Sequence record: MW879341.1
Reading direction: 5' to 3' (one strand)
DNA: 64,000 nt
Shown: positions 21,253 through 63,200 of the stretch, piece after piece
Position numbering within the stretch: the first letter of the stretch is position 1
Layout: each line of letters starts with the position of its first letter
The notes under the pieces: model-generated
The model's database searches: none
Told to the model about the DNA's origin: nothing
The model's input: the letters and a program-made list of their open reading frames with translations, nothing else
Made by a program: the position numbers and the translations under genes

Positions 21253-21274
21253 GGTTACCTCATATTCGATTCAA

Positions 21275-21298: not shown

Positions 21299-21330
21299 CA
21301 TATGCCATATAAATTGGAGGTCTCTGGACC

Positions 21331-22306: not shown

Positions 22307-22311
22307 CCTAC

Positions 22312-22357: not shown

Positions 22358-22367
22358 GGAGTTTGCT

Positions 22368-23492: not shown

Positions 23493-23544
23493 CATAAAAC
23501 CCTACCCCTCCACCTTTTGGGTGGGAGGGTAGGAGATTATGCTG
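23491..23544. terminator. Bidirectional terminator
   Basis: GACATAAAA-ccctacccctccacc-tttt-ggtgggagggtagg-agaTTATGCTG. Confidence 0.75.
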
Positions 23545-25527
23545 TTAGCCAACTGCACGAACGTTAGACAGAGCAGAGATAACACGACCTGGTAATGAAC
23601 CACCAAACCAACTCGCCGCATGTGATACGGAGAAATAGCTATCGAACTCAAGTTTTACACGACGCCAGTTACGAGCCATCTGACGAGTCTTATAGATCTG
23701 ATCTGCTAGACCCAGGCTACCCAATACAGCAAGGTAGTCAGTGAATGCAGTATCGTCACCAAAGAACGCACGGTTCAAACCGCCTGGAGTGATCATATCA
23801 AACGGCGTTGACGTAGTGCCCAGTGGAACGTGCATGATACTTGACAGGTCCGCCACTGTGAACTGCACGTCGATACCTAAAGGTTCGTCGTCCTGTGTCC
23901 AACCAACGTTACCCACACCACGCGTTACGGAGATACTTTCAATCATACCCAGACGAGTCTGAGCACGACCTTTATCGTAAAGCTCTACGAGGAAAGGTGT
24001 ACCGTAAGACTGAGCACCGGCTGAACGAGGTAAACCACCCACTAAGATCATTGAGAGTGGTAACAGTAGTCTCTGGAAACGTGACAGTTTATTCCCATAG
24101 AGACTGCGCAGCTGTATGGTGTAGTCCATGCGTGGTAATGAAGCAGTTGACGTATCCCACACTTTAGGAATGTCCGTCAAGGCGTTACCTGCCAGTGCCA
24201 TCAGTCCTGACATCTGAACACCATCGACCGCACCTTTAACAATCTGCGTAGCGGCGTCTACCGCAGCATCGATAACGCCGATACCGGTTTTACCATCAGC
24301 CATGTTCACACGAGCCTGACGAACACCACTACTGATGCTGTTGAATTTCTCACCCAAATCCGGTGTACGGGTTGAGTTAGAGAAACTCTCGTTAGCAGTA
24401 CCGGCTTCGTGAATGTAGAACGTTACAAATTGAGCACCGTCACGAGCTTCAGCCAGGGCGAAGGTTTTAAACTTATCCACCACGCCAGCATCTTTGAACA
24501 GTTCCTCACGGTTGGAGTCCTTACCATCCGGGTCAGTAGCGTTCTCACCAGCAGGAGAATTGAACCAACGCTGTAGAGCAACCTTCAGCGGTGTACCTGT
24601 TAACGCATTGATCATCTCGCGGTGAGTAGAACCTGGGAACTGAGTCAGTCGATTACGCCATGCCTCATCATCAACCAACGCTGTAGAAGCAGCGACGTCA
24701 GCCAGAGCCTCGTTCCAGATATCCGCTAAACGCTGAGCACGAGTAGACAGCGAGTAGATATCAATCGCGCCGTTCTTACTCCACAGAGAAGGAATCATCT
24801 TAGCATACTGATCGAACTGTCCAGCAGCGGTATCGAAGTTAACATTCTCGTAGATAATCTGGTTTGTAGTTGGGTCGCGTACAGGCATGCCCTGAGCGTC
24901 CCTACGAGCCACAGCAAGCTCAGTATTCTGCTGAGGAATACCAAAGCCTAGGTTAGCCGCTAAGCGGTTAGCAAAGCTCTGTACGGCGTTCCAATAGATC
25001 GGCATGTTAGGACGCAGATAATAGAAACGAGTCGACGGAGTACCAGCCAATGTCTTCAGCGTCTTACCAATTAGAATAAATGGCATAAACGGAAGAATGG
25101 CTACGTAACCTGCAAGTTTACCAGCGTCGTAGAAAAGGGAACCTGATTTACCAGTACGCACCAACATACCAGCATCAGAGTTATAGAAGCTACTGAAGAA
25201 ACTTACCAGTCCAGTATACTCGGGTGTACCGAAACGCATACTGATCGTACGGGCGTTATCGTCAATGGCCTCAGAGTAGTAGTCACCCATCCCGCGAGAC
25301 ACCCATTCAAACAGGCGTTCTCCCTTAGGGTCACAGTAACGAGTATATTGAGCTGGCGGGTTCATTGCGCGATTGCCGCCAAGCGTTGTATCCTCGTACT
25401 TATAGAAGTTAGAGGTTGCAGTTCGACGAGAGATAACAAATTCGTCGAAGCTACCCGGTTCCGTCAAGAACATCTGACGTATCCACCGGTTATCCTCTTT
25501 TAAAAAACGCGTTTCAGCTGCCATCAC
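23545..25527 (-). CDS. Tail-tip/baseplate hub protein (phiKZ gp182-like, 660 aa)
   Basis: Directly downstream of the tape-measure gene; C-terminal LGMIESISVTRG hub-like motif. Confidence 0.65.
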   Translation of the reverse strand: MMAAETRFLKEDNRWIRQMFLTEPGSFDEFVISRRTATSNFYKYEDTTLGGNRAMNPPAQYTRYCDPKGERLFEWVSRGMGDYYSEAIDDNARTISMRFGTPEYTGLVSFFSSFYNSDAGMLVRTGKSGSLFYDAGKLAGYVAILPFMPFILIGKTLKTLAGTPSTRFYYLRPNMPIYWNAVQSFANRLAANLGFGIPQQNTELAVARRDAQGMPVRDPTTNQIIYENVNFDTAAGQFDQYAKMIPSLWSKNGAIDIYSLSTRAQRLADIWNEALADVAASTALVDDEAWRNRLTQFPGSTHREMINALTGTPLKVALQRWFNSPAGENATDPDGKDSNREELFKDAGVVDKFKTFALAEARDGAQFVTFYIHEAGTANESFSNSTRTPDLGEKFNSISSGVRQARVNMADGKTGIGVIDAAVDAATQIVKGAVDGVQMSGLMALAGNALTDIPKVWDTSTASLPRMDYTIQLRSLYGNKLSRFQRLLLPLSMILVGGLPRSAGAQSYGTPFLVELYDKGRAQTRLGMIESISVTRGVGNVGWTQDDEPLGIDVQFTVADLSSIMHVPLGTTSTPFDMITPGGLNRAFFGDDTAFTDYLAVLGSLGLADQIYKTRQMARNWRRVKLEFDSYFSVSHAASWFGGSLPGRVISALSNVRAVG

Positions 25528-25578
25528 TCAATCCTTCATTAGAAAGAAAGGGGTCCTGTCTAAGCGACCCCTCTTACT

Positions 25579-41435: not shown

Positions 41436-41445
41436 TTCCATACGG

Positions 41446-41470
41446 TTTTGAGATATATATTATCTATAGG
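41446..41470 (+). promoter_or_regulatory. Phage early-type promoter
   Basis: TTTTGAGATATATATTATCTATAGG. Confidence 0.6.
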
Positions 41471-41477
41471 TAAAGTG

Positions 41478-42236
41478 ATGCAAATATATCGCAAAGGCAC
41501 CGACAGCTTTGGTGCTGTCCAATTAGTACCACAGGTCTTCTATCAGTTCTGGGACGGCGATATCGACGCAACTGACGTAGGTCGTTACCCGAAACCGTTG
41601 GACCCACTCCCAGAGATCAACTGGGAGATCTTAGTCTCCGCATCGGAATGGCGCGAACGCATCGTAAGTGCCGATACTGACAACTCTATCAGTATGTCCA
41701 AACTGCGCGAGATTCCTGACAACTATATCGAAGCCGCAATGCTGAATTTGATTTATGGGTATCCAATGACCTATAACACAATGAACGCTAACTACTTACC
41801 CCTGCGTGTCGATACAGACTTTAACGTCAACCCAATCGGCTACCCGGCTTACGCTATGGTTCTGCTAGCTATCAAGACACTGATTCAGGACTTGGTTGCT
41901 AAAGGTACCGTAGAGGCACAGAGCCGCGCTGAGACGCTGCGTCAGCTATTACGCCACCTTACCTACGTTGCTATTCAGATCGTGTTAAACAACACGCCTG
42001 TGAAGCCTAACGGTGTGGTGTTCGTGGGAGCATTGACCAGTACTGAAAACTCTGGGTGCGATTTAGTCTATTACGATAACGAAGCGTACACTAAGTGGAT
42101 TGCTGCTGGCGGTAACGAAGGTTTAGCCTGCGCTGAGTGGGTACTGAACCAACGTAGTCCAGACGACCAGACGATCACCGGTCAGATTGCTATCCTCAAC
42201 CGTTGGAAGCCTCTGACAGATATCACCCAATCATAA
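41478..42236 (+). CDS. Hypothetical protein (about 252 aa)
   Basis: AGGT RBS then ATG 41478. Confidence 0.65.
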   Translation: MQIYRKGTDSFGAVQLVPQVFYQFWDGDIDATDVGRYPKPLDPLPEINWEILVSASEWRERIVSADTDNSISMSKLREIPDNYIEAAMLNLIYGYPMTYNTMNANYLPLRVDTDFNVNPIGYPAYAMVLLAIKTLIQDLVAKGTVEAQSRAETLRQLLRHLTYVAIQIVLNNTPVKPNGVVFVGALTSTENSGCDLVYYDNEAYTKWIAAGGNEGLACAEWVLNQRSPDDQTITGQIAILNRWKPLTDITQS

Positions 42237-42239
42237 CCC

Positions 42240-42269
42240 AGGTAGGACTTCGGTCCTACCTTTATGCCG
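42240..42269 (+). terminator. cUUCGg hairpin + TTTATGCCG terminator
   Basis: AGGTAGGAC-TTCG-GTCCTACCT-TTATGCCG; core identical to the copy at 52239. Confidence 0.78.
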
Positions 42270-42287
42270 CTCATTAAGGAGTCTTAA

Positions 42288-42968
42288 ATGCAAATCACCA
42301 TCGAGTCACAACACCTCACCCGCGTTCAGTCAGATCGTGCACTTTTGGAATACGTGGGCAATATCCCTAAAGTTCACGCCAGCTTCAGTGACTTTGACGG
42401 ACTGTTCCCAACGGTCAGTGGTCGTGCCCTGCGTAGCTTACTGCTTAACGCACCTACTCTGGTGCCTGAACTTAATACTCCCACCTTTGAAGAAGTCGCA
42501 CACCACTATACACCCATGCGTTTACACCCGGTGTATCACGGTCTGATTCTCAATCAGGAAAGTTCAATTGACGAACTTATCCAATCGGTTCAACCTATCT
42601 TTGGTTTCTACCGTAACCGCCGTATCGGTCTCCCTGCTCTGATTGCTCTCCTTTACGTACTGGTTAGTATGCGTGAAACCTGGAAGCTGACAGATCGTCA
42701 ACGGGAAGCTATCGACTACTACCTGTGGCGTGTAGCGTATACCATTCAAGCCAGTGCCAACTCACTAACTCATCTGGAGTCTTCTCTGGAACCAGTGCGT
42801 GCTCTGTATATCCGCCGTATGCGTGATCAGTCTAAACCTGACGAGATCATCGTTGTAGTGGACGCTGCTGTCTATGCTGCTTATCTCAAAGCGGGCTATA
42901 CAGAAGAACAACTCATCAAGCAGGTTGCAACACGCGACACTGAATCGCTCTACGTGTCCGCAGTGTAG
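42288..42968 (+). CDS. Hypothetical protein (226 aa)
   Basis: TAAGGAG RBS. Confidence 0.7.
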   Translation: MQITIESQHLTRVQSDRALLEYVGNIPKVHASFSDFDGLFPTVSGRALRSLLLNAPTLVPELNTPTFEEVAHHYTPMRLHPVYHGLILNQESSIDELIQSVQPIFGFYRNRRIGLPALIALLYVLVSMRETWKLTDRQREAIDYYLWRVAYTIQASANSLTHLESSLEPVRALYIRRMRDQSKPDEIIVVVDAAVYAAYLKAGYTEEQLIKQVATRDTESLYVSAV

Positions 42969-42985
42969 TCATTAATCCCAAACAG

Positions 42986-43010
42986 TTTTGAAGTATATAT
43001 TACCTCTGTG
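42986..43010 (+). promoter_or_regulatory. Phage early-type promoter
   Basis: TTTTGAAGTATATATTACCTCTGTG contains the exact TATATTAC. Confidence 0.72.
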
Positions 43011-43031
43011 ATTAACCAATAAGGATTGCCC

Positions 43032-43418
43032 ATGAACGTAACTAACATTAAACACATCAGCACCAAATTCGACGCAGATATCGGCATGGTCGTAGTGCAG
43101 GTAGACGTTACTCTGGATAACGACACCGTACTGAAAGAGCGCTATGCCGTCTGCCCAGTCAAACGTATCGATATTGTAGATGGTCGTATCTACGGTATCG
43201 TTGAAATGGTGAGCGGTGCGAGTCTGGGTAAGAAAGGGGTATTCTCACTCCACGCCTGTGATACCACACGCTTCGCCTCCCGTGCAAAGAACGCGCATCA
43301 ACTGTGGACTGGTGTAGTGCCAGAGATTAACCGCTGGTTAGATGCACAAGCGCTGGCAGGTATCCGTCTGCGCTCTGTAGTAAATACCATCCGTGACGTA
43401 GAGTTACAGGTATCGTAG
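43032..43418 (+). CDS. Hypothetical early protein
   Basis: TAAGGA RBS then ATG 43032. Confidence 0.65.
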   Translation: MNVTNIKHISTKFDADIGMVVVQVDVTLDNDTVLKERYAVCPVKRIDIVDGRIYGIVEMVSGASLGKKGVFSLHACDTTRFASRAKNAHQLWTGVVPEINRWLDAQALAGIRLRSVVNTIRDVELQVS

Positions 43419-43513
43419 TAAAATAATACATGCTTGACGTATAAATTTGAAAGAGCGTGTATGACACCCTTGACACACAAATCCCCAATTGATCAATTGA
43501 ATGGAGTAGTACA

Positions 43514-43945
43514 ATGAGCACTATCAAACCTGAAGTTCGTAAAATCGCTGACAACCTGAAATCTGACGCTTCTTTCAACGAAGACGGATCTCCGGCATTC
43601 GCACTGGATGCGTATGAGCGTAACCTGGGCGAAGGTCTGACCCTCGAAGCGCGTAAAGCGTTTGAGAAGAACGACAACAACTTCATGTGTGCTGCGGCGC
43701 TGGCCTTCGGTGAACTGTCTACCGACAAAATGAAAGACAACAAAGATCTGGAAAAGACCGCTACCCGCGTTACTCTGGGCGGCGACAAACTGGATCTGAG
43801 CTTCACCCGTAAAAGTGAAGTGTCTGACGGCAAAGGCGGTCGTATGGAAGTCCTGGGTTCGGTTGGCGTTAAGTACCGTGCTACTGCGCACCTGACTGCC
43901 GTTAAGAAACACCTGCGCGAAACTGCAACCTCTGCACTGAGCTAA
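43514..43945 (+). CDS. Abundant small protein (143 aa), possibly HU/IHF-like fold
   Basis: GGAG RBS; strongly optimised codons. The CDS is well supported; the fold is an inference. Confidence 0.7.
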   Translation: MSTIKPEVRKIADNLKSDASFNEDGSPAFALDAYERNLGEGLTLEARKAFEKNDNNFMCAAALAFGELSTDKMKDNKDLEKTATRVTLGGDKLDLSFTRKSEVSDGKGGRMEVLGSVGVKYRATAHLTAVKKHLRETATSALS

Positions 43946-43954
43946 GGTTCGGCG

Positions 43955-44140
43955 TTGGTTGCGAAGAGTGTAGTAACTGAATCCCTGGATCGGTTACTGG
44001 AACGTTTCGACCCTGAAGAGTTCTCGTTCGACGAGAGACACGATGTCGCAGTGCTCGCTGAATACATCACAGACCACCTGGAAGAAGTCGGGTGGTTGAA
44101 TGTTACAGATGCAGCACCAGTCATCGACTCAGAAGGGTAA
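43955..44140 (+). CDS. Small acidic protein, paralogue 1 (61 aa)
   Basis: TTG start after TAAGG; 16 D/E versus 4 K/R. Confidence 0.65.
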   Translation: MVAKSVVTESLDRLLERFDPEEFSFDERHDVAVLAEYITDHLEEVGWLNVTDAAPVIDSEG

Positions 44141-44209
44141 CAAAACCATTGCCTCCATGTGGGGCAATGTAATCGGTCACAAGACCATCACGATTTAAGG
44201 AATTTATCA

Positions 44210-44413
44210 GTGACTACTAAAGTACAGGCTACCGAATCACTCGCAGACCATCTGAGTTCTTACGAAGGTCGTGAAGTATTTTCTTTCGCTTCAGCCGAAG
44301 ATCGTGCTGGACTGGCAGAGTTCGTGATTGATCACCTCGACGAGCTCGAAGTGCTGACGCTTACTGATGTTGCTGACGTCATCGACGCTGGCGAACCGGC
44401 TGCCGCCGAGTAA
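44210..44413 (+). CDS. Small acidic protein, paralogue 2 (67 aa)
   Basis: TAAGGA RBS then GTG 44210; 16 D/E versus 3 K/R; aligns end to end with paralogue 1. Confidence 0.7.
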   Translation: MTTKVQATESLADHLSSYEGREVFSFASAEDRAGLAEFVIDHLDELEVLTLTDVADVIDAGEPAAAE

Positions 44414-44738
44414 GCGCAATGGATTGCGATGTGGTGGAATAGACGGTTATGGTTCGGTGCTCTGTCACCATTAAACGCTCTAGTAGGGTTGCATCGCCAC
44501 TAAACCGCCACATCGCTCCCGGTTGGATCTCACCATAACGAGGTCACGCTGGATGCTGAATGAGTTAATGACATTCCGGAAAAATGTAACTAACCTTTCA
44601 ACCATCATCACAGTGCTTGGTCTACAAAGACTTTCAGTGTTCAGTGTGTATGTGGAGAGACTTTAGACACCTCTCCACATTCCACTGCATACTACCATGC
44701 AGTAACCCCAGTGGTCGCCAATAGACTGCTAACATAAG
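44414..44738 (+). ncRNA. Candidate structured non-coding RNA
   Basis: ORF-free 325 nt with at least five stems, including 12-bp 44426-44437/44505-44516 and 10-bp 44650-44659/44671-44680. Confidence 0.5.
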
Positions 44739-45680
44739 GTGTTACTAATGAAAAGAACTATCGACTTAACCTGCCAATACAAAAACGACTACTACCTGCC
44801 ATTATGTGGTAAGGTGGTTGACGATTACGTTGAACTGGATATCCGTCTGGCTCAAACTCCAGAACAGTTTACCGGTAAAGCTGAATTATCCATTGACGGC
44901 GAGTACGCTACGTACATCGTTCAGATTAAGGATAAGCGTGTAGAGGCTGCGTTACGTAAAGGCGATCCTACGATCTCCCGCAATAACCCTAGCTTGACGT
45001 TCCAACCGAAGCGTATCAATCTCACCGACATCTCGTATGTGGGTGAAGGTTATCACCGCATTCACGTTACCAGCATCGAGGGTAATACAGAAGAGAACGC
45101 TCTGCGTAACTTGGTATCTATCATTATGGATAACCTGGTAGCAGGCAATCAACTCTCCTTTGCTATGGCTATGTCCTTCACTGGTCTGGTCAACCTCGCC
45201 AACGGTAACTATCAGGTTGAAGCCTCCGTCATCAAAGACGGTGCCGTACTGCCAAACGTTACCCGCCGGATTACAGCGCAGCATCTTCGTGGTGCTATCC
45301 GCATCCAGCGTGTAGTCGACATCAAGCAGATCGATTCTGTTACGCGTGAGTCTACGATCATTAACGATTGGAGCAAGTTGTGGGATAGTTATCCGAATAC
45401 TCCACTGCAACGCTTTATCGCTTCAGTAACGACGTTGGGTGGTTATGGTCCAGTTACCTACACCACCGAATACAAAGAGGATATCTCCGACTCTACAGTG
45501 TTACCTCCTACACATCTGGATGCTTGGCATGATCTGGGTTGGAGTGGGACCATCGAAGACCTGGTGAAAGCGACCTCAGAATTCTTACCTGAGAAAACTG
45601 TGAGCTTCTTATCTATCGGACCTTACGATGCCATCCACTGTAAGAACGCAGTGATCATCTTCCCAGACGCTAGCGTCTAA
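44739..45680 (+). CDS. Hypothetical protein (313 aa)
   Basis: TAAGG RBS, GTG start. Confidence 0.7.
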   Translation: MLLMKRTIDLTCQYKNDYYLPLCGKVVDDYVELDIRLAQTPEQFTGKAELSIDGEYATYIVQIKDKRVEAALRKGDPTISRNNPSLTFQPKRINLTDISYVGEGYHRIHVTSIEGNTEENALRNLVSIIMDNLVAGNQLSFAMAMSFTGLVNLANGNYQVEASVIKDGAVLPNVTRRITAQHLRGAIRIQRVVDIKQIDSVTRESTIINDWSKLWDSYPNTPLQRFIASVTTLGGYGPVTYTTEYKEDISDSTVLPPTHLDAWHDLGWSGTIEDLVKATSEFLPEKTVSFLSIGPYDAIHCKNAVIIFPDASV

Positions 45681-45691
45681 CTGTTACCGAC

Positions 45692-45732
45692 AGGAGGACT
45701 TCGGTCCTCCTTTTTAATCTACTTCTTTTTTT
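45692..45732 (+). terminator. cUUCGg hairpin terminator with delayed U-tract
   Basis: aggaggac-ttcg-gtcctcct-tttt ... ACTTCTTTTTTT. Confidence 0.78.
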
Positions 45733-45745
45733 GCACAGCAGAGCA

Positions 45746-46450
45746 ATGAACATGGAATTTTCGAGAGACCTCGCTAGAGTTACGCACACGTTTGAGTTTA
45801 TCACCGCTGTGGCGTATTTGCATGACCACTATCCTCACCACAAGACAGACACACTAAAAGATCTGTTGAACGGTGACTACTATAGCGATAAACGCTGTGG
45901 TCAGCTTATTACCCATATGGACGTCGCGCTGGCACTGTGTATCGTAAATGATACCGTACCATGCTGGGACGAGGGTAGACTCTTTTATACTGCGTTCAAA
46001 GGGATACCACATCCACGCTCTGACTATACCAGTCTGAATAGTCCTAACTTTAAGACTATCCGTTGGTTGGGTGAGCAGTTAGCCAAAGAAGTAAATCGTT
46101 ATCAGAATGCTGCTGTGTCAGTGAACTCTGTCCTGCGCAAGATCGATACCGATGTAGCATTGTACGGTAGTAACCGCACAGTCGCGTATTGGAATGATCG
46201 TCGTGATCAGAACTGCACGTTCATCATTAACACACTACGCAATATCCTGGTACAAGGTCGCCATCTTAAACGTTACTGGGAATCTCTGTTCTGGTTTTTA
46301 CCGAAGGACAACGAGAACTATACACTCCCTCTTACGTTTAAGCGGGTTACTGTGCCAGGTGTGCCCAATGCTGTGAAAGTATACGTGCGTAGCAAGAGAC
46401 ACAAACTCTGTCTCTGCACGCGTAACAGTTATCTCATTCTAGGTGCATAG
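45746..46450 (+). CDS. Hypothetical protein
   Basis: Long ORF; start uncertain (45746 or 45752). Confidence 0.6.
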   Translation: MNMEFSRDLARVTHTFEFITAVAYLHDHYPHHKTDTLKDLLNGDYYSDKRCGQLITHMDVALALCIVNDTVPCWDEGRLFYTAFKGIPHPRSDYTSLNSPNFKTIRWLGEQLAKEVNRYQNAAVSVNSVLRKIDTDVALYGSNRTVAYWNDRRDQNCTFIINTLRNILVQGRHLKRYWESLFWFLPKDNENYTLPLTFKRVTVPGVPNAVKVYVRSKRHKLCLCTRNSYLILGA

Positions 46451-48036: not shown

Positions 48037-48037
48037 C

Positions 48038-48077
48038 AGGGAGGCTTCGGCCTCCCTCATCACTAACTTCTTTTTTT
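48038..48077 (+). terminator. cUUCGg hairpin terminator with delayed U-tract
   Basis: agggaggc-ttcg-gcctccct ... ACTTCTTTTTTT. Confidence 0.78.
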
Positions 48078-48087
48078 GGTATTTAAA

Positions 48088-49830: not shown

Positions 49831-49833
49831 TCA

Positions 49834-49870
49834 CAGTAGCTGCCTTCACGGGCAGCTACTGCTTTATGCC
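49834..49870 (+). terminator. Hairpin + TTTATGCC terminator
   Basis: cagtagctgcc-ttcacg-ggcagctactg-cTTTATGCC. Confidence 0.75.
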
Positions 49871-49882
49871 CTCAATCTAAAG

Positions 49883-49904
49883 TCAGATATATATTACCTC
49901 TATG
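49883..49904 (+). promoter_or_regulatory. Phage early-type promoter
   Basis: TCAGATATATATTACCTCTATG contains the exact TATATTAC. Confidence 0.72.
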
Positions 49905-49936
49905 CAACTAACCTTGCATAACTAAGGAATACAAAT

Positions 49937-52230: not shown

Positions 52231-52238
52231 TTTACACT

Positions 52239-52268
52239 GGTAGGACTTCGGTCCTACCTTTTATGCCG
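52239..52268 (+). terminator. cUUCGg hairpin + TTTTATGCCG terminator
   Basis: GGTAGGAC-TTCG-GTCCTACC-TTTTATGCCG. Confidence 0.78.
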
Positions 52269-52309
52269 TTTCATCATTTTTTCAGATATATATCACATTC
52301 ATGAATAAA
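52266..52309 (+). promoter_or_regulatory. Extended early-type promoter, copy 1
   Basis: CCGTTTCATCATTTTTTCAGATATATATCACATTCATGAATAAA. Confidence 0.7.
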
Positions 52310-52331
52310 CAAACAAAATGGAGTAACCACC

Positions 52332-53063: not shown

Positions 53064-53106
53064 CAGCATAAAAGCCACTCTACCCAAAAGGTAGAGTGGC
53101 TATGCT
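53064..53106. terminator. Bidirectional terminator
   Basis: CAGCATAAA-agccactctacc-caaaa-ggtagagtggct-ATGCT between convergent genes. Confidence 0.78.
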
Positions 53107-53115
53107 TACGCCTTT

Positions 53116-53445: not shown

Positions 53446-54354
53446 TTACCCCGGGATGACTTCGTCGTCTTTTGGCGGAATCGTCAAATCGAACGGTTCG
53501 TTGAAGTGCAGCATTAACAGACCGCGCATTTTCACACTGTCTTTAGACAGCTGAATCGCAACCACGTACTTGTAAGTAGGGTTACCGGCAATGGCAGATG
53601 AGTTCAGTGCTGCGTAAGTGATCTTCGCACCTGAGAGGCTGTAGTCGCCAGCAGCCATAGAGAATGCAGGGTTAACATATTTCTTCAGGATGTCGCAGAT
53701 TGACTGGTCTACCTCGGATTTAACCGTCAGCTTAGACAGGGTAGCAAATTCCGGCGTGAAGCTAATCGGATAAGTCGCTACGTAAGCCTGTTGAGCTGTA
53801 AGATCTGCCGATGGGTAGACGAAGCCCGACAGATCAACTTTCTTTACTGTGTCGGTAGCAACATAGCCAGTCAGTGAACATTTGAAATCAAAGCCCACAT
53901 TAAACTGGTAGTTGTCTGCGATTGGGTCGACACGGATGGTAAAGGTGCTGCCGTCATCTGGGGTAGTTACGTCACCCTCGATGATTTCGTTAGGCGACAA
54001 GCCCATACCATAGTAAATGTTGATGAACGGGACCAGCTGTGACTTTTTGGTGATCTTAGGGATAGCCATCACCGAGTCTTTACCACCCTTACGGACAGAG
54101 ACATACGTTTCAAACTTCTCGCGATTATACAGCAAGTAGTTAGAACCGCCGTAGGCCACACCGTCGATACCAGTTACACGGATAGCAGTATCTTTGGTAG
54201 TGGCAGAACCACGCCAAGTGCCAGTCAGTGAAGCTGGGCGTGATACTGTTACATTGGTATCGGGAACCATGGTTGGAGAAATACCATTCAGTGAAGAATA
54301 GTTAACCAACAGTCGACGGATGAAGGACTCGCCCCAATAGTTACGTCTTAACAT
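53446..54354 (-). CDS. Paralogous virion/tail-associated protein, array member (302 aa)
   Basis: YGGSNYLLYNR; LSGFVYP; GLLMLHFN. Confidence 0.72.
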   Translation of the reverse strand: MLRRNYWGESFIRRLLVNYSSLNGISPTMVPDTNVTVSRPASLTGTWRGSATTKDTAIRVTGIDGVAYGGSNYLLYNREKFETYVSVRKGGKDSVMAIPKITKKSQLVPFINIYYGMGLSPNEIIEGDVTTPDDGSTFTIRVDPIADNYQFNVGFDFKCSLTGYVATDTVKKVDLSGFVYPSADLTAQQAYVATYPISFTPEFATLSKLTVKSEVDQSICDILKKYVNPAFSMAAGDYSLSGAKITYAALNSSAIAGNPTYKYVVAIQLSKDSVKMRGLLMLHFNEPFDLTIPPKDDEVIPG

Positions 54355-54366
54355 TTAAGGCTCTCC

Positions 54367-55263
54367 TTATGCGTTATACGGCAGGAACAACTGAATACCA
54401 CCACGGCCCGCTGAAGCGGCGTTAGCGCAATAAGTAGCATTCAGGTTGATAACTGCCATTGCGTTCGTGTCGTTGTAGTAGACATCTGCGGGGTCTGCGC
54501 CTGCCGGTGTGTTATTAAGAGACAGGTTAGCGTTGTAGATGTTGAACGAACGATTAGACGTGTTGTTATATTCCCACGGATCTCCCGTGAAATCACGCAA
54601 CGCGGCTGCAAGTGCCGACCACGAAGCTGAGCTGTTCTGACTGTATACGGTCATCAGAGAAGGCTTGATAATCGTGAAGTCTAAGCCGCGATAGTAGGTG
54701 GTAAAGTCGTGTCGCGGGTCAACGGGTGGTACCAAGTTTGCCAGGGTAGATTCCTGACGAGATACCATCGTTTCAAGACTCGGCGTACCACGGAACCACT
54801 GCACCGACGGAATCTTACCAATGAACGCCAAACTGGCTGTGTTGGATGGAATACCCAACACGCTGGTTTGCGTCCAGCCCGTATAGTTGGCGTTGTTGTT
54901 AAAGTTACCGTTCGTCCACTCCGATGCGTCAATCGACATACCGTACAGCGAGTTAAACAGTGAGCGGAGAGCTTCGTACGTGGTAGCGGTATAATGAGTA
55001 AGGACAACTTTAGTATCCTTAAACAGATTCGCCAGGTCGATACGGTTGTAGCGGAAAGTAATCAGTCCGCGATAACCGGCACCCTGCACACCACGCATCA
55101 CTACGGAGGTGTTGAACGGCGCTGCCTCGGTTGGAGTCAGTACCGTTGGACCTGCGTGAACCACAAAGGTGTCTTTCGACACCTTGTAGGGCAGATCAGG
55201 GTTGTCCTTATTAATCAGATCATACAGCAGATCTAAGGACGGTTTCTGATATAAGCCAGACAT
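54367..55263 (-). CDS. Paralogous virion/tail-associated protein, array member (298 aa)
   Basis: GYRGLITFRYNRIDL; YYRGLDF. Confidence 0.72.
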   Translation of the reverse strand: MSGLYQKPSLDLLYDLINKDNPDLPYKVSKDTFVVHAGPTVLTPTEAAPFNTSVVMRGVQGAGYRGLITFRYNRIDLANLFKDTKVVLTHYTATTYEALRSLFNSLYGMSIDASEWTNGNFNNNANYTGWTQTSVLGIPSNTASLAFIGKIPSVQWFRGTPSLETMVSRQESTLANLVPPVDPRHDFTTYYRGLDFTIIKPSLMTVYSQNSSASWSALAAALRDFTGDPWEYNNTSNRSFNIYNANLSLNNTPAGADPADVYYNDTNAMAVINLNATYCANAASAGRGGIQLFLPYNA

Positions 55264-55277
55264 TAAGTCTACCTCTC

Positions 55278-56120
55278 TTAACGGTTGTTGTAGTGGTAGT
55301 AAGCCACACCGACGATGTTGTCAGCGACGATACCGGTCTGGACAAACACACGGTCGTAATCGCGGTTTGCACCGGCTACGCTGGCCGTGGTTGCATCAGA
55401 GATATAGTTACTGTTCGCAGCACGCGGGTAGTCTGGTACACCACGGTCGGTCAGAATCTGACGGAGCGAATCCCAGTTGTTACTGTAGTTCGCCCAGCTA
55501 CCGAAGTAGTTCTTGTAGTCACTGAAGTCGATACCCCAGGTCAACAGGCCGGCAGAGTTCAGGTCATCCACTTTCTTATCGGCGTGATTCAACACGGTCA
55601 ATGCGGTGGCGGTGATCTGAATACCCAGGTCTGGTTTACCACGATATACGCGCAGATTGACTGCTCCGATATATGCCGGTGAGGTCGGAACTGCGGTGAT
55701 ATTTGAGTTCTCGATTCGGTCTGCCTGACTAGGGTAGCTGAAGCCATTGTTCTGAATATCCCAGGTATTCAGATTCAGACCAACTTGCAGACAGATCTGT
55801 GGTAGCATCTGGTGGATGTTACGTCCGGCATAGTTCTGCAACTGAACGTAGTTGTTCAGACCGTTCAGAGTATCGCTTGGCAGGATAACCTTGGACAGAT
55901 CGATACGGTTGTAGAACACCACAAACGAACCCATGTATCCGTCACCCTGCTGACCACGAATACGCGCTGAGGTATTATGCATACCGTTCGCAGCGTTAGG
56001 CGTCACCGCAGTGATCGCCTCAATCGTACAGTTGTCGTTAGACAGGGGTGGTTGGATCTGGGGGTTAGCTGCCGCAATCAGGTCATAGACCAGAGCACGG
56101 GAGTCCTTACTGTATAACAT
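55278..56120 (-). CDS. Paralogous virion/tail-associated protein, array member (280 aa)
   Basis: GYMGSFVVFYNRIDL; GVAYYHYN. Confidence 0.72.
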   Translation of the reverse strand: MLYSKDSRALVYDLIAAANPQIQPPLSNDNCTIEAITAVTPNAANGMHNTSARIRGQQGDGYMGSFVVFYNRIDLSKVILPSDTLNGLNNYVQLQNYAGRNIHQMLPQICLQVGLNLNTWDIQNNGFSYPSQADRIENSNITAVPTSPAYIGAVNLRVYRGKPDLGIQITATALTVLNHADKKVDDLNSAGLLTWGIDFSDYKNYFGSWANYSNNWDSLRQILTDRGVPDYPRAANSNYISDATTASVAGANRDYDRVFVQTGIVADNIVGVAYYHYNNR

Positions 56121-56130
56121 AACTTACCCC

Positions 56131-57012
56131 TTAACCGATTTCAGACGGGTCGAGTGGTTTGCTGTAGTGCAACAGCATCTCACCACGAACGTTGGTGGTT
56201 TTGGTCGTATCGAGTGTCAGCGCGATAACGTACTGATAACGCTCGTTGTTGGCGTACTGGCGATCCTTAGCAGGACCGTTGTAAGCTACAGTAGCGTTAG
56301 TCAGGTTAGCCGGACCGGCCGCCAGACTGTCACCGATAACCCACGGGTTAGCAACTGACGCGTACGGCTGTTTACCATTGATGATGGCCAGGAGTGAGTC
56401 ATCCAGCTTCGCACCCACTGCAATACCTTTAAGGGTATCGTAGGAATCGCTGAAGTCAGCACCATAGACCAGCGCCTGTCCGAGACGAACAGTGGTGTCT
56501 TCAGATACTGGGTAGACGATACCATCCAGTGAGGTTTTCTGAACGATGTCGTCCAGTACATCATCACCTTTGGTCAGGAAGAAGGTCCACTCACCAATCC
56601 AACCCAGCGAATCCGGTGCAGCTTTCAGAGTAACCTGAGCTACCTCGTTTTCATAGGTAATCGGTTGGTCAACGATGTCACCCGGTACGAAGTTCAAACC
56701 GTATACGGTATTGAACGCCGATGCCAACTTGGCAGTGGTGTCGGGTTGAGGACCTTTGATACGATCGCCGATCATGGTAACCAGGTCGTTGAGGTCCAGA
56801 CGGTTATAAAGGAATACGTTGGTACCAGTCCAGGTAGCACCGGCATTAGCAGTGATACGGATAGCAGTATTCTGACTGATATCCTTACCGTTCCACTTGC
56901 CATTCGTCGGCTGAGGCTTACTGAACGTCATTTGGGACATGACAACGTTCGATCCATTTAAGGAGTTAACGTTATCAATGATAGTTTGTTTAACGTCACT
57001 ATAGAGTGCCAT
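56131..57012 (-). CDS. Paralogous virion/tail-associated protein, array member (293 aa)
   Basis: WTGTNVFLYNRLDL; LDGIVYP; GEMLLHYS. Confidence 0.72.
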   Translation of the reverse strand: MALYSDVKQTIIDNVNSLNGSNVVMSQMTFSKPQPTNGKWNGKDISQNTAIRITANAGATWTGTNVFLYNRLDLNDLVTMIGDRIKGPQPDTTAKLASAFNTVYGLNFVPGDIVDQPITYENEVAQVTLKAAPDSLGWIGEWTFFLTKGDDVLDDIVQKTSLDGIVYPVSEDTTVRLGQALVYGADFSDSYDTLKGIAVGAKLDDSLLAIINGKQPYASVANPWVIGDSLAAGPANLTNATVAYNGPAKDRQYANNERYQYVIALTLDTTKTTNVRGEMLLHYSKPLDPSEIG

Positions 57013-57021
57013 TAGTCAACC

Positions 57022-57819
57022 TCATAAGTAATAATGCAGATAGATCGTGCCGACATAATTCGGATCATCGACCCCGGTGATAGTCGAAACGCGCGCGTAT
57101 TTCTTATTAGCGGTGGTCACTTGCGAGGTATTCGTAAAGTGAGTTAACTGCGCACCACTAAGTTTGATATCTCCTAAACCACGCTCTTTCAGTATCTGAC
57201 GTAACGCAGCATTATTAGCATTGTTAGTCAACACGCCCGCCGGAGTTGTGCGGATAGCGTATTGGTCAGAACTGCAATCCCAACCGTAGGTCAGGAGATC
57301 AAGGCACTTACGTCCGTCTGGGTCTTGAGGGTGTTTAAGCACCGTCAATTGACGCGCACGCAGGAGAGCCAGGTTACGAACCATTGGGATAATCTTAACC
57401 AATACACGCCCTGTGTACTGAATGGACTTCGACCCAGGCGTTAACCAGAAATTCGTACCACCCGTATACACGTCGGTGCGGAAATCGTTGGGGTCTAAGT
57501 TCAAACCGTAGTTGGCATTGATCAGTTGAGACGCCTCACGCATTGTCATACTTCGGTTAACCGATAAGACAGGCGGTTGGTTCTTAAAGAGCGTTTGTAA
57601 ATCCAGTCGGCGCACGTTGACGTTGATATCACCAACCAAACCATGCGATTGTCTACCAGTCAAGGTTACAGTCGTATTCGGTTTAGTGGCACTACGTTCA
57701 TTGAGTGCTGTGACTTTACGGACGCGTACGTTGTTCGGGGTCAGTGGAATCTTTGGATTGTACGCAGTGTTGATACTATCGCAAAGGTTCTCCAGCGGCG
57801 TTTTAGAATAAATAGGCAT
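57022..57819 (-). CDS. Paralogous virion/tail-associated protein, array member (265 aa)
   Basis: GLVGDINVNVRRLDL; GTIYLHYY. Confidence 0.72.
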   Translation of the reverse strand: MPIYSKTPLENLCDSINTAYNPKIPLTPNNVRVRKVTALNERSATKPNTTVTLTGRQSHGLVGDINVNVRRLDLQTLFKNQPPVLSVNRSMTMREASQLINANYGLNLDPNDFRTDVYTGGTNFWLTPGSKSIQYTGRVLVKIIPMVRNLALLRARQLTVLKHPQDPDGRKCLDLLTYGWDCSSDQYAIRTTPAGVLTNNANNAALRQILKERGLGDIKLSGAQLTHFTNTSQVTTANKKYARVSTITGVDDPNYVGTIYLHYYL

Positions 57820-57833
57820 TCGTTACCCCTTTA

Positions 57834-57855
57834 GTGGGGAGCTTTCACTCCCCAC
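57834..57855 (-). terminator. Hairpin inside the array (partial terminator or processing stem)
   Basis: gtggggag-ctttca-ctccccac between 57862 and 57819. Confidence 0.45.
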
Positions 57856-57861
57856 CGCTGA

Positions 57862-58794
57862 TTACGCGTTGTAGTGCAGGTAGAGATCGCCCGCGAAGTT
57901 GGTGCACTTGGTGTCATCCAGAGTGAACACAACTACGGTGTTGAAGTTGGTGTTAGCGTTTGCCTGCACTTCCAGTTCAACCGGGTCAGTAGACGGGGTT
58001 GACGGGTCGGCACGAGTAGAACCTGCGAACTTGATGGTCGCGCCACGAACGTTGTAGTCCGCTGCGTCATCACCGGCGTGCCACAGTTCAGGCACAACTT
58101 TGTTCAGCTCTTTGGCCAGTGCGGTATCTTCGATAGCGCCGCCAGTTGCCAGGGTAGACAGGAAGGTACGGATGCTGTTGCAGTCTACGCCGTAGGAGTA
58201 GATGTAAGCCTGACCTTTCATGGTACCGTCAACTGGGTAGTGCAGACCATCCAGACGAGTTTTGGTTACAACCAGGTTCAGACGCTCACCAACGTCAGCA
58301 TCTTCGCCGACAGTAACATCCAGCACACCGAAGTAAGCCAGAGAGTCATCAGCGATAGTGATGGTAGCGTGAGCAACCGGTGCAGCTTCGGTCAGTTCAG
58401 CAACAGTTGCACTTACCACTTCTTTCTTGTCGATGGCCAGGCCGTAACGGGCATTCAGGCGGTCTATCAGATCCAGGGTGGTTTTAGCGCCTTTAACATC
58501 GAGGTTAACGGCAATGTTCTTGAACAGTTTGCTGATGTCCAGACGATCGTACGCCAGGGTTACGGAACCCACGTATGGAGAACTACGAGTCGCGGTACAC
58601 AGCAGTTCGGTGTTCCAGTCTTTCTTGACTTCACCTTCCGCTGGCTCACCTTCAGTTGGTACAACCACAGCCGGCTTACCGAACACAACCTGAGTGGTGT
58701 TGATATCGATCGAGAGTTTAGTATCAGGATCGGTGTTGGTTTCGTTAACCAGATCCAGGACCAGAAGGTTGGATGCTTTGTTATACTTACCCAT
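57862..58794 (-). CDS. Paralogous virion/tail-associated protein, array member (310 aa, strongly optimised codons)
   Basis: PYVGSVTLAYDRLDI; LDGLHYP; GDLYLHYN. Confidence 0.75.
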   Translation of the reverse strand: MGKYNKASNLLVLDLVNETNTDPDTKLSIDINTTQVVFGKPAVVVPTEGEPAEGEVKKDWNTELLCTATRSSPYVGSVTLAYDRLDISKLFKNIAVNLDVKGAKTTLDLIDRLNARYGLAIDKKEVVSATVAELTEAAPVAHATITIADDSLAYFGVLDVTVGEDADVGERLNLVVTKTRLDGLHYPVDGTMKGQAYIYSYGVDCNSIRTFLSTLATGGAIEDTALAKELNKVVPELWHAGDDAADYNVRGATIKFAGSTRADPSTPSTDPVELEVQANANTNFNTVVVFTLDDTKCTNFAGDLYLHYNA

Positions 58795-58806
58795 TGTTCA
58801 TTTCCT

Positions 58807-59652
58807 TTAGATGTTTAAGGGACTGTTGTATTGAATGTAGACGCGCCCTGCCAAGTTAGTGCAATACAATGCTAACTCAACAATGCAGACCGTATCGAAG
58901 TACGGGTCGGTAGGGAGATCTGACGTATTTGGCCCATGGTAAACCACAGTGGACTCAAACAAGTTCCAGTTGGCCGGTGAACGGAAGATCGTCCATTTGT
59001 CACCCGTTACCGAGAGGATGTTCATCAACTCAGCAGTGGTGATGTTGGTACCACGTTTAGCATACGGTCGCATCGCTTCGGTGAAGTCAGTGCGATATGC
59101 GTAAATCGGTGCCTGTCCGTTATTCGTATTGAAGTACGGATAGTCGAAGAGGCTAGCAGTGGATTGCGGCTCGATTACATCTGACAGAATCGCGTCGCCT
59201 GCCACAGTACGCATGGTTAGCGTACCAACCCAAAGCAATGAGTTATCAAGTAACTCAAACGTCACACGGTTGTTTACTTTATCGACTGGTGCTAAACGCA
59301 CTTCATCTTTAGTAAGCTCGATACCGGTGAATTGCTTCAGAGCGCCCAAACAGTCGTGGTTATTTTCCACAGTGATTGGAGAGAGTGGCAGTTGGAAATC
59401 GTTCTCACTGTTTACACCGACGATCAGCGAGATATCGTAACGGTTGTAGAACAGGTCGACAAATCCGTAAACCTTTGCGTCGTTACCAGCACGCAACTGG
59501 ATGGCAGTGTCCTTATCTGGGAACTGCGCCAGTTCTTCAGGTTCCAGTGCACGAGGACCTAAGAACGTCATCTCATCAACGGTAAGGCTGACTTTATAGA
59601 GAGCGTTCAGGTAATCGAGGATATACTGTTTTCCATTAGGATACAGGAACAC
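58807..59652 (-). CDS. Paralogous virion/tail-associated protein, array member (about 281 aa)
   Basis: GGAGG RBS then GTG 59652 (MFLYPNGKQYILDYLN); YGFVDLFYNRYDI; GRVYIQYN. Confidence 0.72.
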   Translation of the reverse strand: MFLYPNGKQYILDYLNALYKVSLTVDEMTFLGPRALEPEELAQFPDKDTAIQLRAGNDAKVYGFVDLFYNRYDISLIVGVNSENDFQLPLSPITVENNHDCLGALKQFTGIELTKDEVRLAPVDKVNNRVTFELLDNSLLWVGTLTMRTVAGDAILSDVIEPQSTASLFDYPYFNTNNGQAPIYAYRTDFTEAMRPYAKRGTNITTAELMNILSVTGDKWTIFRSPANWNLFESTVVYHGPNTSDLPTDPYFDTVCIVELALYCTNLAGRVYIQYNSPLNI

Positions 59653-59653
59653 G

Positions 59654-60469
59654 TTAAACCTCCGGAATCCAAGGAATAAGTAAAGACCCAACCCAGTCAG
59701 CAGTTTCTAATTTGTCAATACGTAATACCATCGTATCGCCAGACTTCTCCTGCGTACAGGTACCGCCTTTGATGTTGACTTCACCAATCGCTACAGCACC
59801 GGCGTCTTTGTATACAATGTTGAGGTTAACCACACCATTGATCGCATCAGCCAGATCGGCGTTAGTAGCACGCCCGCCATAGAAGTTGGTAAATGCGCTT
59901 TGGATCTCAACGAAGTTATACCCCCACGCGACATATTCCAGTCGACGCTTACCCGTTTTAGAGAATGGTTCTTTAACAATGTCCAGACCTTGTGCAGTCA
60001 CTAAGGTGGCAATGTTCGGACGAGACTTCACCACACGCACGTCAACAGAACCCGACCACATCAAGCAGCTTGGTTTTGTTTCCAGCGTGACGATATAGTC
60101 ATCACCGAGGTCTTTTACCGAGACATCCACAATGTCGTCTTTGGTTAAGAAGACACCGTAGGTTTTATAGAATGCCGGAAGGATATCAGACAACCACGAT
60201 GCGCCTGTGAACTGAACCAGTAGGGTCTGATTCTCAAACGCGTGGTCTAACGAAAGACGTTGATATTCTACATCTACCGTACCCTGATACCCCTGCCGCA
60301 TAAGAGCATAAACACGAACTCGGGCATTTTGCAATGCACCGGGGGTGGTTATCTCCTGTGGAATCCCAAAGCCTACATTATTCAGACTTAGGGGATTGAC
60401 GACGATGGTGTTCTCCGTATTAATGGTATCCAACATCGTGTCGGTGGAGCTTTTCTTGTACATACTCAT
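59654..60469 (-). CDS. Paralogous virion/tail-associated protein, first array member (271 aa)
   Basis: GYQGTVDVEYQRLSL; AWGYNF. Confidence 0.7.
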   Translation of the reverse strand: MSMYKKSSTDTMLDTINTENTIVVNPLSLNNVGFGIPQEITTPGALQNARVRVYALMRQGYQGTVDVEYQRLSLDHAFENQTLLVQFTGASWLSDILPAFYKTYGVFLTKDDIVDVSVKDLGDDYIVTLETKPSCLMWSGSVDVRVVKSRPNIATLVTAQGLDIVKEPFSKTGKRRLEYVAWGYNFVEIQSAFTNFYGGRATNADLADAINGVVNLNIVYKDAGAVAIGEVNIKGGTCTQEKSGDTMVLRIDKLETADWVGSLLIPWIPEV

Positions 60470-60529
60470 AGTGAACCCTTCAATGTGAATAGTAGTAGGG
60501 CAGTGTTCTTCAACATATTATCGGGGATA

Positions 60530-60573
60530 CCGTTTCATCATTTTTTCAAATATATACCACCTCTATGTATAAA
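60530..60573 (+). promoter_or_regulatory. Extended early-type promoter, copy 2
   Basis: CCGTTTCATCATTTTTTCAAATATATACCACCTCTATGTATAAA. Confidence 0.68.
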
Positions 60574-60593
60574 CAAAGAAGGAATATACAGAA

Positions 60594-61444: not shown

Positions 61445-61455
61445 TCTCTCCCAGT

Positions 61456-61484
61456 AGGAGGCCCTCTGTGGGCCTTCTTTTTTT
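61456..61484 (+). terminator. Intrinsic terminator
   Basis: aggaggccc-tctgt-gggccttct-TTTTTT. Confidence 0.72.
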
Positions 61485-61501
61485 ATACTAAGGATAACAG
61501 A

Positions 61502-63065: not shown

Positions 63066-63070
63066 AGCAA

Positions 63071-63116
63071 ACCCTCACCGTTAATTCGGTGGGGTCTGTT
63101 ATGCCTATTCTTTTTT
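63071..63116 (+). terminator. Hairpin + TTATGCC + U-tract terminator
   Basis: accctcaccg-ttaatt-cggtggggt-ctgTTATGCC-tattcTTTTTT. Confidence 0.72.
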
Positions 63117-63124
63117 ACACTTTA

Positions 63125-63169
63125 CCGGTTTCATTAAATTTTCAGATATATATGACCTTTGTGAATAAA
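63125..63169 (+). promoter_or_regulatory. Extended early-type promoter, copy 3
   Basis: CCGGTTTCATTAAATTTTCAGATATATATGACCTTTGTGAATAAA. Confidence 0.68.
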
Positions 63170-63200
63170 GCGAAATAAACCATACGCCCTAGGAGAAATT

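Follow-up and report, generated by a model that had tools for sequence, protein, structure and literature searches.

Among the protein-controlled RNA operators of phages are the Mu mom mRNA, in which Com binds a hairpin and opens the structure hiding the ribosome-binding site, the RegA and gene 32 operators of T4, and the coat-protein hairpin of MS2. The closest described RNAs in phiKZ-like jumbo phages are short species derived from 5′ untranslated regions (5′UTRs) in the phiKZ and 201phi2-1 transcriptomes, one of which is conserved upstream of the gp182 tail gene (PMC10914365, PMC11512511). The element analyzed here lies between genes 93 and 94 of Erwinia phage pEa_SNUABM_54 (MW879341.1, 272,635 bp), which infects Erwinia amylovora. 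The window, the whole 64,000-nucleotide stretch of DNA that was analyzed, corresponds to bases 62001-126000 of this genome, and all positions without another label refer to it. The conserved part of the element, the 227-nt core, is tentatively read as a structured plus-strand leader (5′UTR) of gene 94 that is co-transcribed with genes 90-93, with a probable cis-acting role as a riboregulator of two states. Of the models considered, a switch-like leader of the downstream gene fits the locus best, and it is held here at a little less than an even chance.

The annotated start of gene 94 is an ATG at 44748 with a Shine-Dalgarno (SD) sequence, AAGGTG, at 44736-44741, and the non-coding stretch is therefore 44414-44747. 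This start replaces the GTG at 44739 that the first-pass annotation, made from the letters of the window, had taken as the beginning of the downstream gene. The gap of 334 nt is the largest between annotated genes of the window, as that annotation had claimed; the runner-up measures 239 nt and the next co-directional gap 135 nt. Comparison with dinucleotide-shuffled controls gave a plus-strand minimum free energy (MFE) of -106.3 kcal/mol versus -85.1 ± 4.7 kcal/mol (z = -4.5), and none of 100 shuffles folded as well. The minus strand gave z = -2.1. Six perfect 8-nt inverted-repeat windows were observed in the gap where 0.7 were expected. ARAGORN detected no tRNA or tmRNA in the window, and a scan of the whole window with Rfam 15 returned no match at gathering thresholds. 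Matches in 44100-45000 were at chance level (E above 1), and the homologous gaps of phages Desertfox, SA002, and pEa_SNUABM_37 and of the relative L011 had none at E up to 1. Covariance-model scanning thus assigned the locus to no known riboswitch or other Rfam family.

Relatives of the locus were contigs from public assemblies, reached by searching large protein collections with genes 94 and 93. The gene 93 product is identical to that of the window in contigs L020-L027, 85% identical in the 89-kb contig L015, and about 70% identical in L016, L011, and L012; L011 is identical to L018 and L019. The gap measures 334 nt in L020-L027 and 233-234 nt in the L015, L016, L011, and L012 group. Alignment with five related contigs splits it cleanly into positions 44414-44520, which hold the CGCAA/TTGCG hairpin, the 12-bp stem with its branched interior, and GTTATGGT, and the core at 44521-44747. 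The near-identical contigs L020-L027 share the 5′ domain with the window, and L011, L012, L015, L016, L018, and L019 lack it. Relatives outside the pEa_SNUABM_54 lineage carry 6-8 unrelated bases in its place, and there the gene 93 stop lies 6-8 nt before the core. No other DNA-level match to the region was found among GenBank phages. Exact-pattern scans of IMG/VR returned nothing, a pattern scan of metagenomes returned two matches that are both chance occurrences in unrelated genes, and a scan of a bacterial genome collection for the 12-bp stem pair returned two chance matches inside GC-rich coding sequence. A separate search for related loci with the gene 94 protein returned nothing, and the gene 91 alignment was too divergent for use.

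The core aligns end to end in these relatives, with identities of 95% in L015, 90% in L016, and 90% in L012 compared with 59-93% for the surrounding genes. Its substitutions lack the signature of translation. Genes 91-94 have the expected excess of third-position changes (8/3/29 over the three codon positions in gene 92 and 6/6/27 in gene 93), which identifies genes 92 and 93 as real coding genes. The same counts for the core (4/2/6, 11/5/7, and 10/5/7) show no periodicity, and 1-nt insertions or deletions disrupt every listed open reading frame (ORF), so none is conserved. Folding of the core alone gave z = -3.8.

The helices are maintained by the substitutions. RNAalifold was run on the six distinct, closely related sequences of the core alignment (A6), on which all helix counts rest, and recovered the helices predicted from the window alone: Ha, P2 enclosing two hairpins, H1, H2, and H3 (Table 1). 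The 61 pairs in seven helices are standard pairs in 100% of 366 alignment cells, and sliding the partners by 1-3 columns lowers this value to 32-44%. Two pairs, both in Ha, are fully compensatory (G-C to U-A and A-U to C-G). Ten more paired columns vary on one side, all by transitions that keep the pair through G-U, and no pair is broken; the 5′ strand of P2 has five variable positions, every one a pair-keeping transition (A-U/G-U or C-G/U-G) with none broken. Variable columns outside the helices contain 11 transversions and 5 transitions, which differs from the paired columns (Fisher p = 0.0007). Read from the opposite strand, the wobble pairs would become A-C mismatches, and the selected molecule is therefore plus-strand RNA in the gene sense. 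Kept helices, stability above shuffles, and the lack of a coding signal together form the general pattern of a structured RNA under purifying selection. The core stays 90-95% identical in syntenic relatives while its helices persist through compensatory and wobble changes, and these results support the earlier proposal of a functional plus-strand multi-stem RNA. All stems listed in that proposal exist in the sequence at the coordinates it gave, among them ACATT/AATGT, ATGTGGAGAG/CTCTCCACAT (44650-44680), and ACTGCAT/ATGCAGT (44684-44703).

Table 1. Features of the gene 93-gene 94 region of pEa_SNUABM_54, in window coordinates
Feature	Position	Strand	Description
Gene 93 (67 aa)	44210-44413	+	Stop codon directly precedes the gap; homologues P0005 and P0006
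5′ domain, lineage-specific	44414-44520	+	12-bp stem (44426-44437/44505-44516, one G-U) closing a junction with two hairpins
Conserved structured core RNA, 227 nt	44521-44747	+	Reaches the gene 94 start codon
Hairpin Ha	44526-44545	+	6 bp, 8-nt loop ACCAUAAC; two double changes, one U-G to U-A change
Long-range helix P2	44546-44647	+	44546-44566 with 44629-44647, 19 pairs; encloses the M1 hairpin and hp4
Module M1	44569-44595	+	GACAUUCCGGAAAAAUGUAACUAACC; includes local hairpin 44571-44575/44583-44587; invariant in clade
Hairpin hp4	44601-44621	+	Presents AUCACAGUG; one C-G to U-G change
Hairpin H1	44650-44680	+	10 bp, loop ACUUUAGACAC; two one-sided changes to G-U
Hairpin H2	44684-44703	+	7 bp; stem invariant, loop variable
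Hairpin H3	44710-44730	+	7 bp, loop GCCAAUA; nested inside the anti-SD:SD helix; one G-U/G-C change, loop varies
Anti-SD helix (inverted repeat I10)	44701-44746	+	AGUAACCCC (44701-44709) with GGUGUUACU (44738-44746)
Gene 94 (310 aa), presumed controlled gene	44748-45680	+	From the annotation; own SD and ATG conserved in relatives
Terminator-like hairpin after gene 94	45692-45711	+	Sole plus-strand site in a scan of 42200-45800

The energy models give the core two competing folds. The MFE structure of the window core folded alone differs from the consensus. The 5′ strand of P2 pairs locally with alignment columns 78-95, the 3′ strand of P2 takes the 5′ half of H2 as its partner (44636-44648/44682-44693) and so lengthens H1 to about 21 pairs, and AGUAACCCC pairs with GGUGUUACU across H3, with the 3′ end of H2 becoming part of this helix. 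This last pairing, the anti-SD helix, covers half of the SD (AAGGUG in the RNA) and the spacer before the AUG. A few kcal/mol separate the two folds, and about half of the homologues have one as their MFE structure and about half the other. Pairs of the alternative fold are formed in 96.6% of alignment cells as a whole, in 97.6% for the P2 5′ strand and its alternative partner, where one G-C/A-U double change occurs at columns 35/86, and in 95.8% for the anti-SD helix. The anti-SD helix is part of the MFE structure in four of six homologues, with ensemble probabilities of 0.1-0.9. Ensemble calculations show Ha, H1, and H3 to be stable in nearly all homologues (base-pair probability 0.8-1.0 for H1 in all homologues and 0.99-1.0 for H3). 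P2 and H2 rise and fall together, strictly reciprocally to the extended H1 and the anti-SD helix: the probabilities of P2, H2, and the anti-SD helix are 0.23, 0.27, and 0.66 in the window and 0.84, 0.73, and 0.32 in L015. Both folds are compatible with all substitutions in the alignment.

This pair of folds would have the layout of a riboregulator in which a distal sensor helix is coupled to the ribosome-binding site. In state A, P2 would close a junction carrying the invariant M1 hairpin and hp4, H2 would form, and the SD of gene 94 would be free. In state B, the P2 5′ strand would pair locally, and the P2 3′ strand, a tandem UUCAGUG that is the proposed switching strand, would extend H1 by way of the 5′ half of H2. 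The freed AGUAACCCC would then pair with GGUGUUACU across H3 and cover the ribosome-binding site. The balance between the states would probably be set by a trans factor acting on the invariant loops (M1, the AUCACAGUG loop, and the UAGACAC loop of H1), most likely a phage or host RNA-binding protein and less likely a small ligand. ChmC, a phage-nucleus-associated RNA-binding protein, has no defined motif (PMC11077065), and no candidate partner can therefore be named.

The pairings that compete in the homologues, P2 with H2 versus the extended H1 with the anti-SD helix, are different from those proposed at first. The features on which the first-pass annotation leaned most (the 12-bp stem, the branched domain, the GTTATGGT/ACCATAAC alternative, and the CGCAA/TTGCG competitor) fall in the 107-nt domain that is absent from every relative beyond the near-identical contigs. 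The 12-bp stem itself was found, with 11 Watson-Crick pairs and one G-U. GTTATGGT (44446-44453) and ACCATAAC (44532-44539) are perfect complements as described; about one such 8-nt complement is expected by chance per 334 nt, so this pairing alone is not significant. The 5′ domain folds independently (-38.7 kcal/mol, z = -2.9). No second copy of it was found in the phage collection. An origin by duplication of the core was considered and rejected, the similarity being not significant (p = 0.39). Judged from the alignment, the domain appears to be an accessory, lineage-specific piece, and it is dispensable whether it arose in this lineage or disappeared from the rest. The dispensability of the conspicuous 12-bp stem matters for the design of probes or deletions.

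The transcription context was examined for terminators and promoters. The scan that returned the terminator-like hairpin after gene 94 found no such site in 44414-44747. The promoter classes that recur in other intergenic regions of the window, an early-type box AGATATATATTAYCTCT and TTTATGCC or T-rich boxes after terminators, are absent from 44414-44747, and an early-type box, AAGTATATATTACCTCTGTG, lies upstream of gene 90. With no plus-strand terminator in 42200-45692, no recognized promoter motif in the gap, and a core that begins 6-8 nt past the gene 93 stop in relatives, the element is most simply predicted to be an intercistronic leader within an operon.

Modules of the core recur at a corresponding position in distant phages. 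Every gene of the window is annotated as hypothetical. Gene 91 (143 aa), the upstream neighbor, has 28-36% identical homologues in RAY-like Agricanvirus phages, pEa_SNUABM_37/48, Xanthomonas phage LucasX, RTH11, and Eowyn-like phages of Klebsiella and Serratia, and Peptidase_S80 (the phiKZ-type head protease) was matched by a 258-aa gene three genes further upstream, as seen in a close relative. These matches make the phage a distant relative of the phiKZ-like nucleus-forming jumbo phages and place the gap within a structural-gene region. Gene 88 was tried as the head protease and rejected at 17% identity; the Peptidase_S80 gene is the preceding 258-aa gene. RAY, AH06, Desertfox, pEa_SNUABM_37/48, and Salmonella phage SA002 have a 250-260-nt gap after their gene 91 homologue, and the distant gaps fold far better than shuffles (z = -6.9, -4.5, and -5.8).

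The M1 motif, GACAUUC(0-2 nt)GAAAAAU, occurs exactly once, in the gap, in each of the RAY, AH06, Desertfox, pEa_SNUABM_37, and SA002 loci. It was not found in the LucasX, Eowyn, KpGz_1, RTH11, and phiKZ loci, and M1 has no second copy in the 64-kb window. In pEa_SNUABM_37 and SA002 M1 is followed, as in the window, by a hairpin with AUCACAGUG in its loop, and two stem pairs are changed on both sides. The syntenic gaps of RAY, AH06, Desertfox, pEa_SNUABM_37, and SA002 each contain an H1-type hairpin of 9-10 bp, the only one in its locus, with a loop ending in UAGACAC or UAAGACAC on an entirely different stem; one pair is changed on both sides between pEa_SNUABM_37 and SA002. A covariance model of H1 built from the pEa_SNUABM_54 clade only had its best foreign matches in 168 kb at AH06, RAY, and Desertfox, with E values of 0.01, 0.17, and 0.6 under a rough calibration, and found no second copy in the window. 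MAFFT placed the H1 stems of the different lineages out of register, and that alignment was left out of the model. TAGAC/AGACA was tried as a genome-wide motif and rejected because it is not enriched in intergenic DNA. As the authors interpret the MFE folds, the stretch just before the start codon in RAY, pEa_SNUABM_37, and SA002 is likewise arranged as anti-SD strand, small hairpin, and SD.

Three side observations concern these loci. The 215-kb IMG/VR jumbo contig L060 has the M1 motif CCGAAGACATTCGAAAAATAGACA at 300-600 (minus strand of the locus) in a different, non-syntenic gene context, followed by a hairpin and then by an intrinsic terminator that is strong, the arrangement that a small RNA gene would have. 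A 57-aa ORF, AH06_183, is annotated inside the RAY-type gap (L007, 4499-4672); its insertions and deletions relative to RAY are not multiples of three, so the ORF is probably spurious. For Desertfox gp175 (L068, 755), the annotated start is about 200 nt further downstream than the conserved one of RAY and AH06.

Several observations weigh against a two-state leader of gene 94. The short promoter- or terminator-bearing spacers of the clade are equally conserved (88-100%), so conservation of the core by itself is not special, and six closely related sequences with two fully compensatory pairs give limited power. The would-be switching strands (columns 109-173 and 181-189/218-226) are invariant, and covariation therefore does not distinguish the two states. 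The energy gap between the folds, a few kcal/mol, does not exceed the error of the models, and the helix-3 alternative could follow simply from the repeated CAGUG motif. BLAST and nhmmer searches of the core against the RAY, pEa_SNUABM_37, and SA002 loci found nothing significant, so distant homology is carried by the short modules only, and the order of these modules differs between lineages. A terminator comes after M1 in pEa_SNUABM_37 and in contig L060 and points to a separate short RNA in those two cases. Gene 94, the presumed target, has no Pfam or PHROG match.

Other explanations account for parts of these data. The element could be a stable trans-acting non-coding RNA, processed from the operon transcript or made from an internal start, that binds or titrates a protein or RNA, possibly as a defense decoy, with the adjacency of gene 94 incidental. 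The invariant loops and linkers would suit such an RNA, and the retention of M1 and the UAGACAC loop across very distant phages fits binding sites for a trans partner. M1 and a hairpin precede an intrinsic terminator in pEa_SNUABM_37 and in the non-syntenic L060, and short 5′UTR-derived RNAs are documented in phiKZ and 201phi2-1 (PMC10914365, PMC11512511). The explanation is nevertheless rated as unlikely for pEa_SNUABM_54, where no terminator separates the element from gene 94, no promoter is recognizable in the gap, and the structure extends at its 3′ end into the ribosome-binding site. No defense-related gene, known decoy feature, or Rfam match was found, and nothing favors the defense-decoy role that the first-pass annotation had offered as an option. 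A passive mRNA processing or stability element is a weaker candidate. P2 or the extended-H1 duplex and the A-rich M1 would then serve as RNase III/RNase E sites, hairpins would protect mRNA ends, and no switching would occur. The predicted duplexes of 19-21 bp (P2 or extended H1), the A/U-rich M1 followed by a hairpin in every lineage, and the intercistronic site inside a predicted operon are consistent with this role. Simple hairpins for such a purpose need neither about 230 nt nor invariant loops and linkers, and they do not require motif retention between phages with only about 25-35% identity in the flanking proteins; the reciprocal coupling to the anti-SD helix would also be left without an explanation.

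A DNA-level element, in which M1 and the conserved 9-mer downstream would form a middle-class-like phage promoter or another protein-binding site and the hairpins would be incidental, is considered improbable. The end of M1, AAnnUAAYC, does resemble the phiKZ middle-promoter motif AAanTTACc centered near -24 (PMC4666361), and the conserved ATCACAGTG would sit just upstream of the predicted start point in both pEa_SNUABM_54 and pEa_SNUABM_37. The primary sequence of M1 is kept where its local hairpin is not (pEa_SNUABM_37 and RAY), and M1 stands in another gene context in L060. The substitution pattern instead fits RNA pairing on one strand, with G-U tolerated and transversions compensated. P2 spans M1, so the selected RNA starts upstream of it, and the hairpin around ATCACAGTG covaries between pEa_SNUABM_37 and SA002 and is therefore transcribed whole. 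M1 also occurs a single time in 64 kb, whereas the promoter motifs are repeated within the window. Least probable is the absence of any function, with chance hairpins left in a decaying gene or the remnant of an inserted element. The 5′ domain is dispensable in relatives and the gene content of the neighborhood is fluid, which would fit such decay. For the core this explanation is strongly disfavored: the core is more conserved than the surrounding genes, its insertions and deletions are not in triplets, no pair is broken in 366 cells, and it folds better than shuffles.

The cis-acting two-state leader of gene 94 can be compared with three kinds of described RNA. The 5′UTR-derived small RNA candidates of phiKZ, 201phi2-1, EL, and PhiPA3 (PMC10914365, PMC11512511) are likewise structured, conserved, non-coding sequences directly upstream of a structural-region gene, at the same junction across genera, and M1 followed by a terminator in pEa_SNUABM_37 and L060 matches the biogenesis described for them. 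The junction here is gp173-like to gp174-like and not gp181 to gp182 as for the phiKZ RNA. The pEa_SNUABM_54 element is longer at 227 nt, overlaps the ribosome-binding site, and has no terminator upstream of the gene 94 start at which phiKZ-type premature termination would take place. It falls outside the gp182 family, and the phiKZ gp181/gp182 spacer has no motif in common with it. The window has its own junction like gp181/gp182 at 25525-25578 on the minus strand. A 9-bp hairpin with the loop GCUUAGACAG and a T-rich tail was noted there (about 25544-25572, minus strand), between genes of 2181 and 659 aa that are gp181/gp182-like by size and order. The GCUUAGACAG loop resembles the H1 loop, and the H1 model made no detection at this site.

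Operators of the Mu mom, T4, and MS2 type also place an invariant-loop hairpin beside an SD-sequestering helix, and here too the regulated step would be translation of the following gene on a polycistronic phage mRNA. The core differs from them in being several times larger, in having a long-range helix and a three-helix relay, and in sharing no sequence similarity, and its binding protein is putative only. Translational riboswitches resemble the core in the junction closed by a long helix, the invariant unpaired nucleotides, and two exclusive folds that link a helix to SD accessibility. In the energy models, exclusive pairings connect a sensor helix to an expression platform, as in riboswitches generally. 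The differences are that no Rfam class matches, no ligand candidate is at hand, no metabolic annotation lies downstream, and the modules stand in another order in distant relatives, which would be atypical of an aptamer. The core represents an RNA family not yet classified, though of a general kind that is known; its comparative support is modest but consistent, and the mechanism proposed for it is specific.

The presumed target offers few clues to function. A profile search of gene 94 against the PDB found nothing relevant, its AlphaFold model is unusable (predicted local distance difference test score, pLDDT, of 34), and only six relatives were found among 1.8 billion representatives. It is weakly similar to RAY gp174 (E = 8e-6) and to SA002_1680 and is not similar to the gene after the gap in pEa_SNUABM_37. 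A retron, with the 12-bp inverted repeat as a1/a2 beside the 310-aa gene, was rejected because gene 94 has no reverse transcriptase or other Pfam/PHROG domain. A group I intron was rejected as well: gene 93 is closed by a stop codon, gene 94 starts from an SD and ATG of its own, RF00028 does not match, and no fused homologue is present among the protein matches.

The neighborhood has a fluid gene content among relatives. Gene 94 is 89% identical to its homologue in L016 and 72% identical to that in L015, although most neighboring genes are closer to L015, and these mosaic identities suggest recombination near the RNA element. In L012 (789-2436), the gene 94 homologue is only 207 aa long and is followed by about 720 nt of extra DNA with a 294-aa ORF; this ORF may correspond to P0007, a 294-aa protein that matches the C-terminal two thirds of gene 94. 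L017 (Logan ERR7757500) has a 309-aa ORF at 519-1448 between its gene 91 and gene 93 homologues, with faint HTH_28/DUF7769 matches, which is possibly a mobile-element gene.

Other motifs recur in the window. The AT-rich box AGATATATATTAYCTCT was seen upstream of genes at 41436-41477, 42969-43031, 21253-21330, 49831-49936, 52231-52331, 60470-60593, and 63066-63200 and resembles the early promoters, served by the virion RNA polymerase, of phiKZ-like phages. GC-rich terminator hairpins followed by TTTATGCC are present at 6301-6354, 14408-14468, 20756-20802, 23493-23544, and 53064-53115, and also at 42237-42287, 49831-49936, and 52231-52331. Between convergent gene pairs the terminator hairpins are flanked symmetrically by CAGCATAA ... 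TTATGCTG, and the TATG near these hairpins could be the late-promoter start motif known from phiKZ. A CTTCTTTTTTT box a few bases past terminator hairpins (22307-22367, 45681-45745, 48037-48087, and 61445-61501) may be a third class of regulatory motif. Eight consecutive minus-strand genes of similar size (about 270-310 aa) at 53446-60469 may be a paralogous array.

RNA-level regulation in nucleus-forming jumbo phages is almost unexplored, and the transcriptome papers list short 5′UTR RNAs, none with a mechanism. The pEa_SNUABM_54 element is a concrete case that mutation can test: a 227-nt RNA with supported helices and a competing pair of folds that ends at the ribosome-binding site. Its three short invariant motifs are found again in phages of Erwinia and Salmonella in which protein identity has fallen to about 25-35%. 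The family appears to be built of modules and may give rise to a discrete short RNA in some phages. A bolder and doubtful extension is that the core, the RAY-type, and the pEa_SNUABM_37/SA002-type elements form a new modular regulatory RNA family of Enterobacterales nucleus-forming jumbo phages. Invariant loops (UAGACAC, AUCACAGUG, and GACAUUC..GAAAAAU) would then dock a dedicated phage factor, in a protein- or ligand-sensing riboswitch-like device or a trans-acting RNA. If so, an RNA of this family might take part in handling mRNA between phage nucleus and cytoplasm, or act against host defense. These phages are studied as biocontrol agents against fire blight, and knowledge of which non-coding stretches are functional aids their annotation and engineering.

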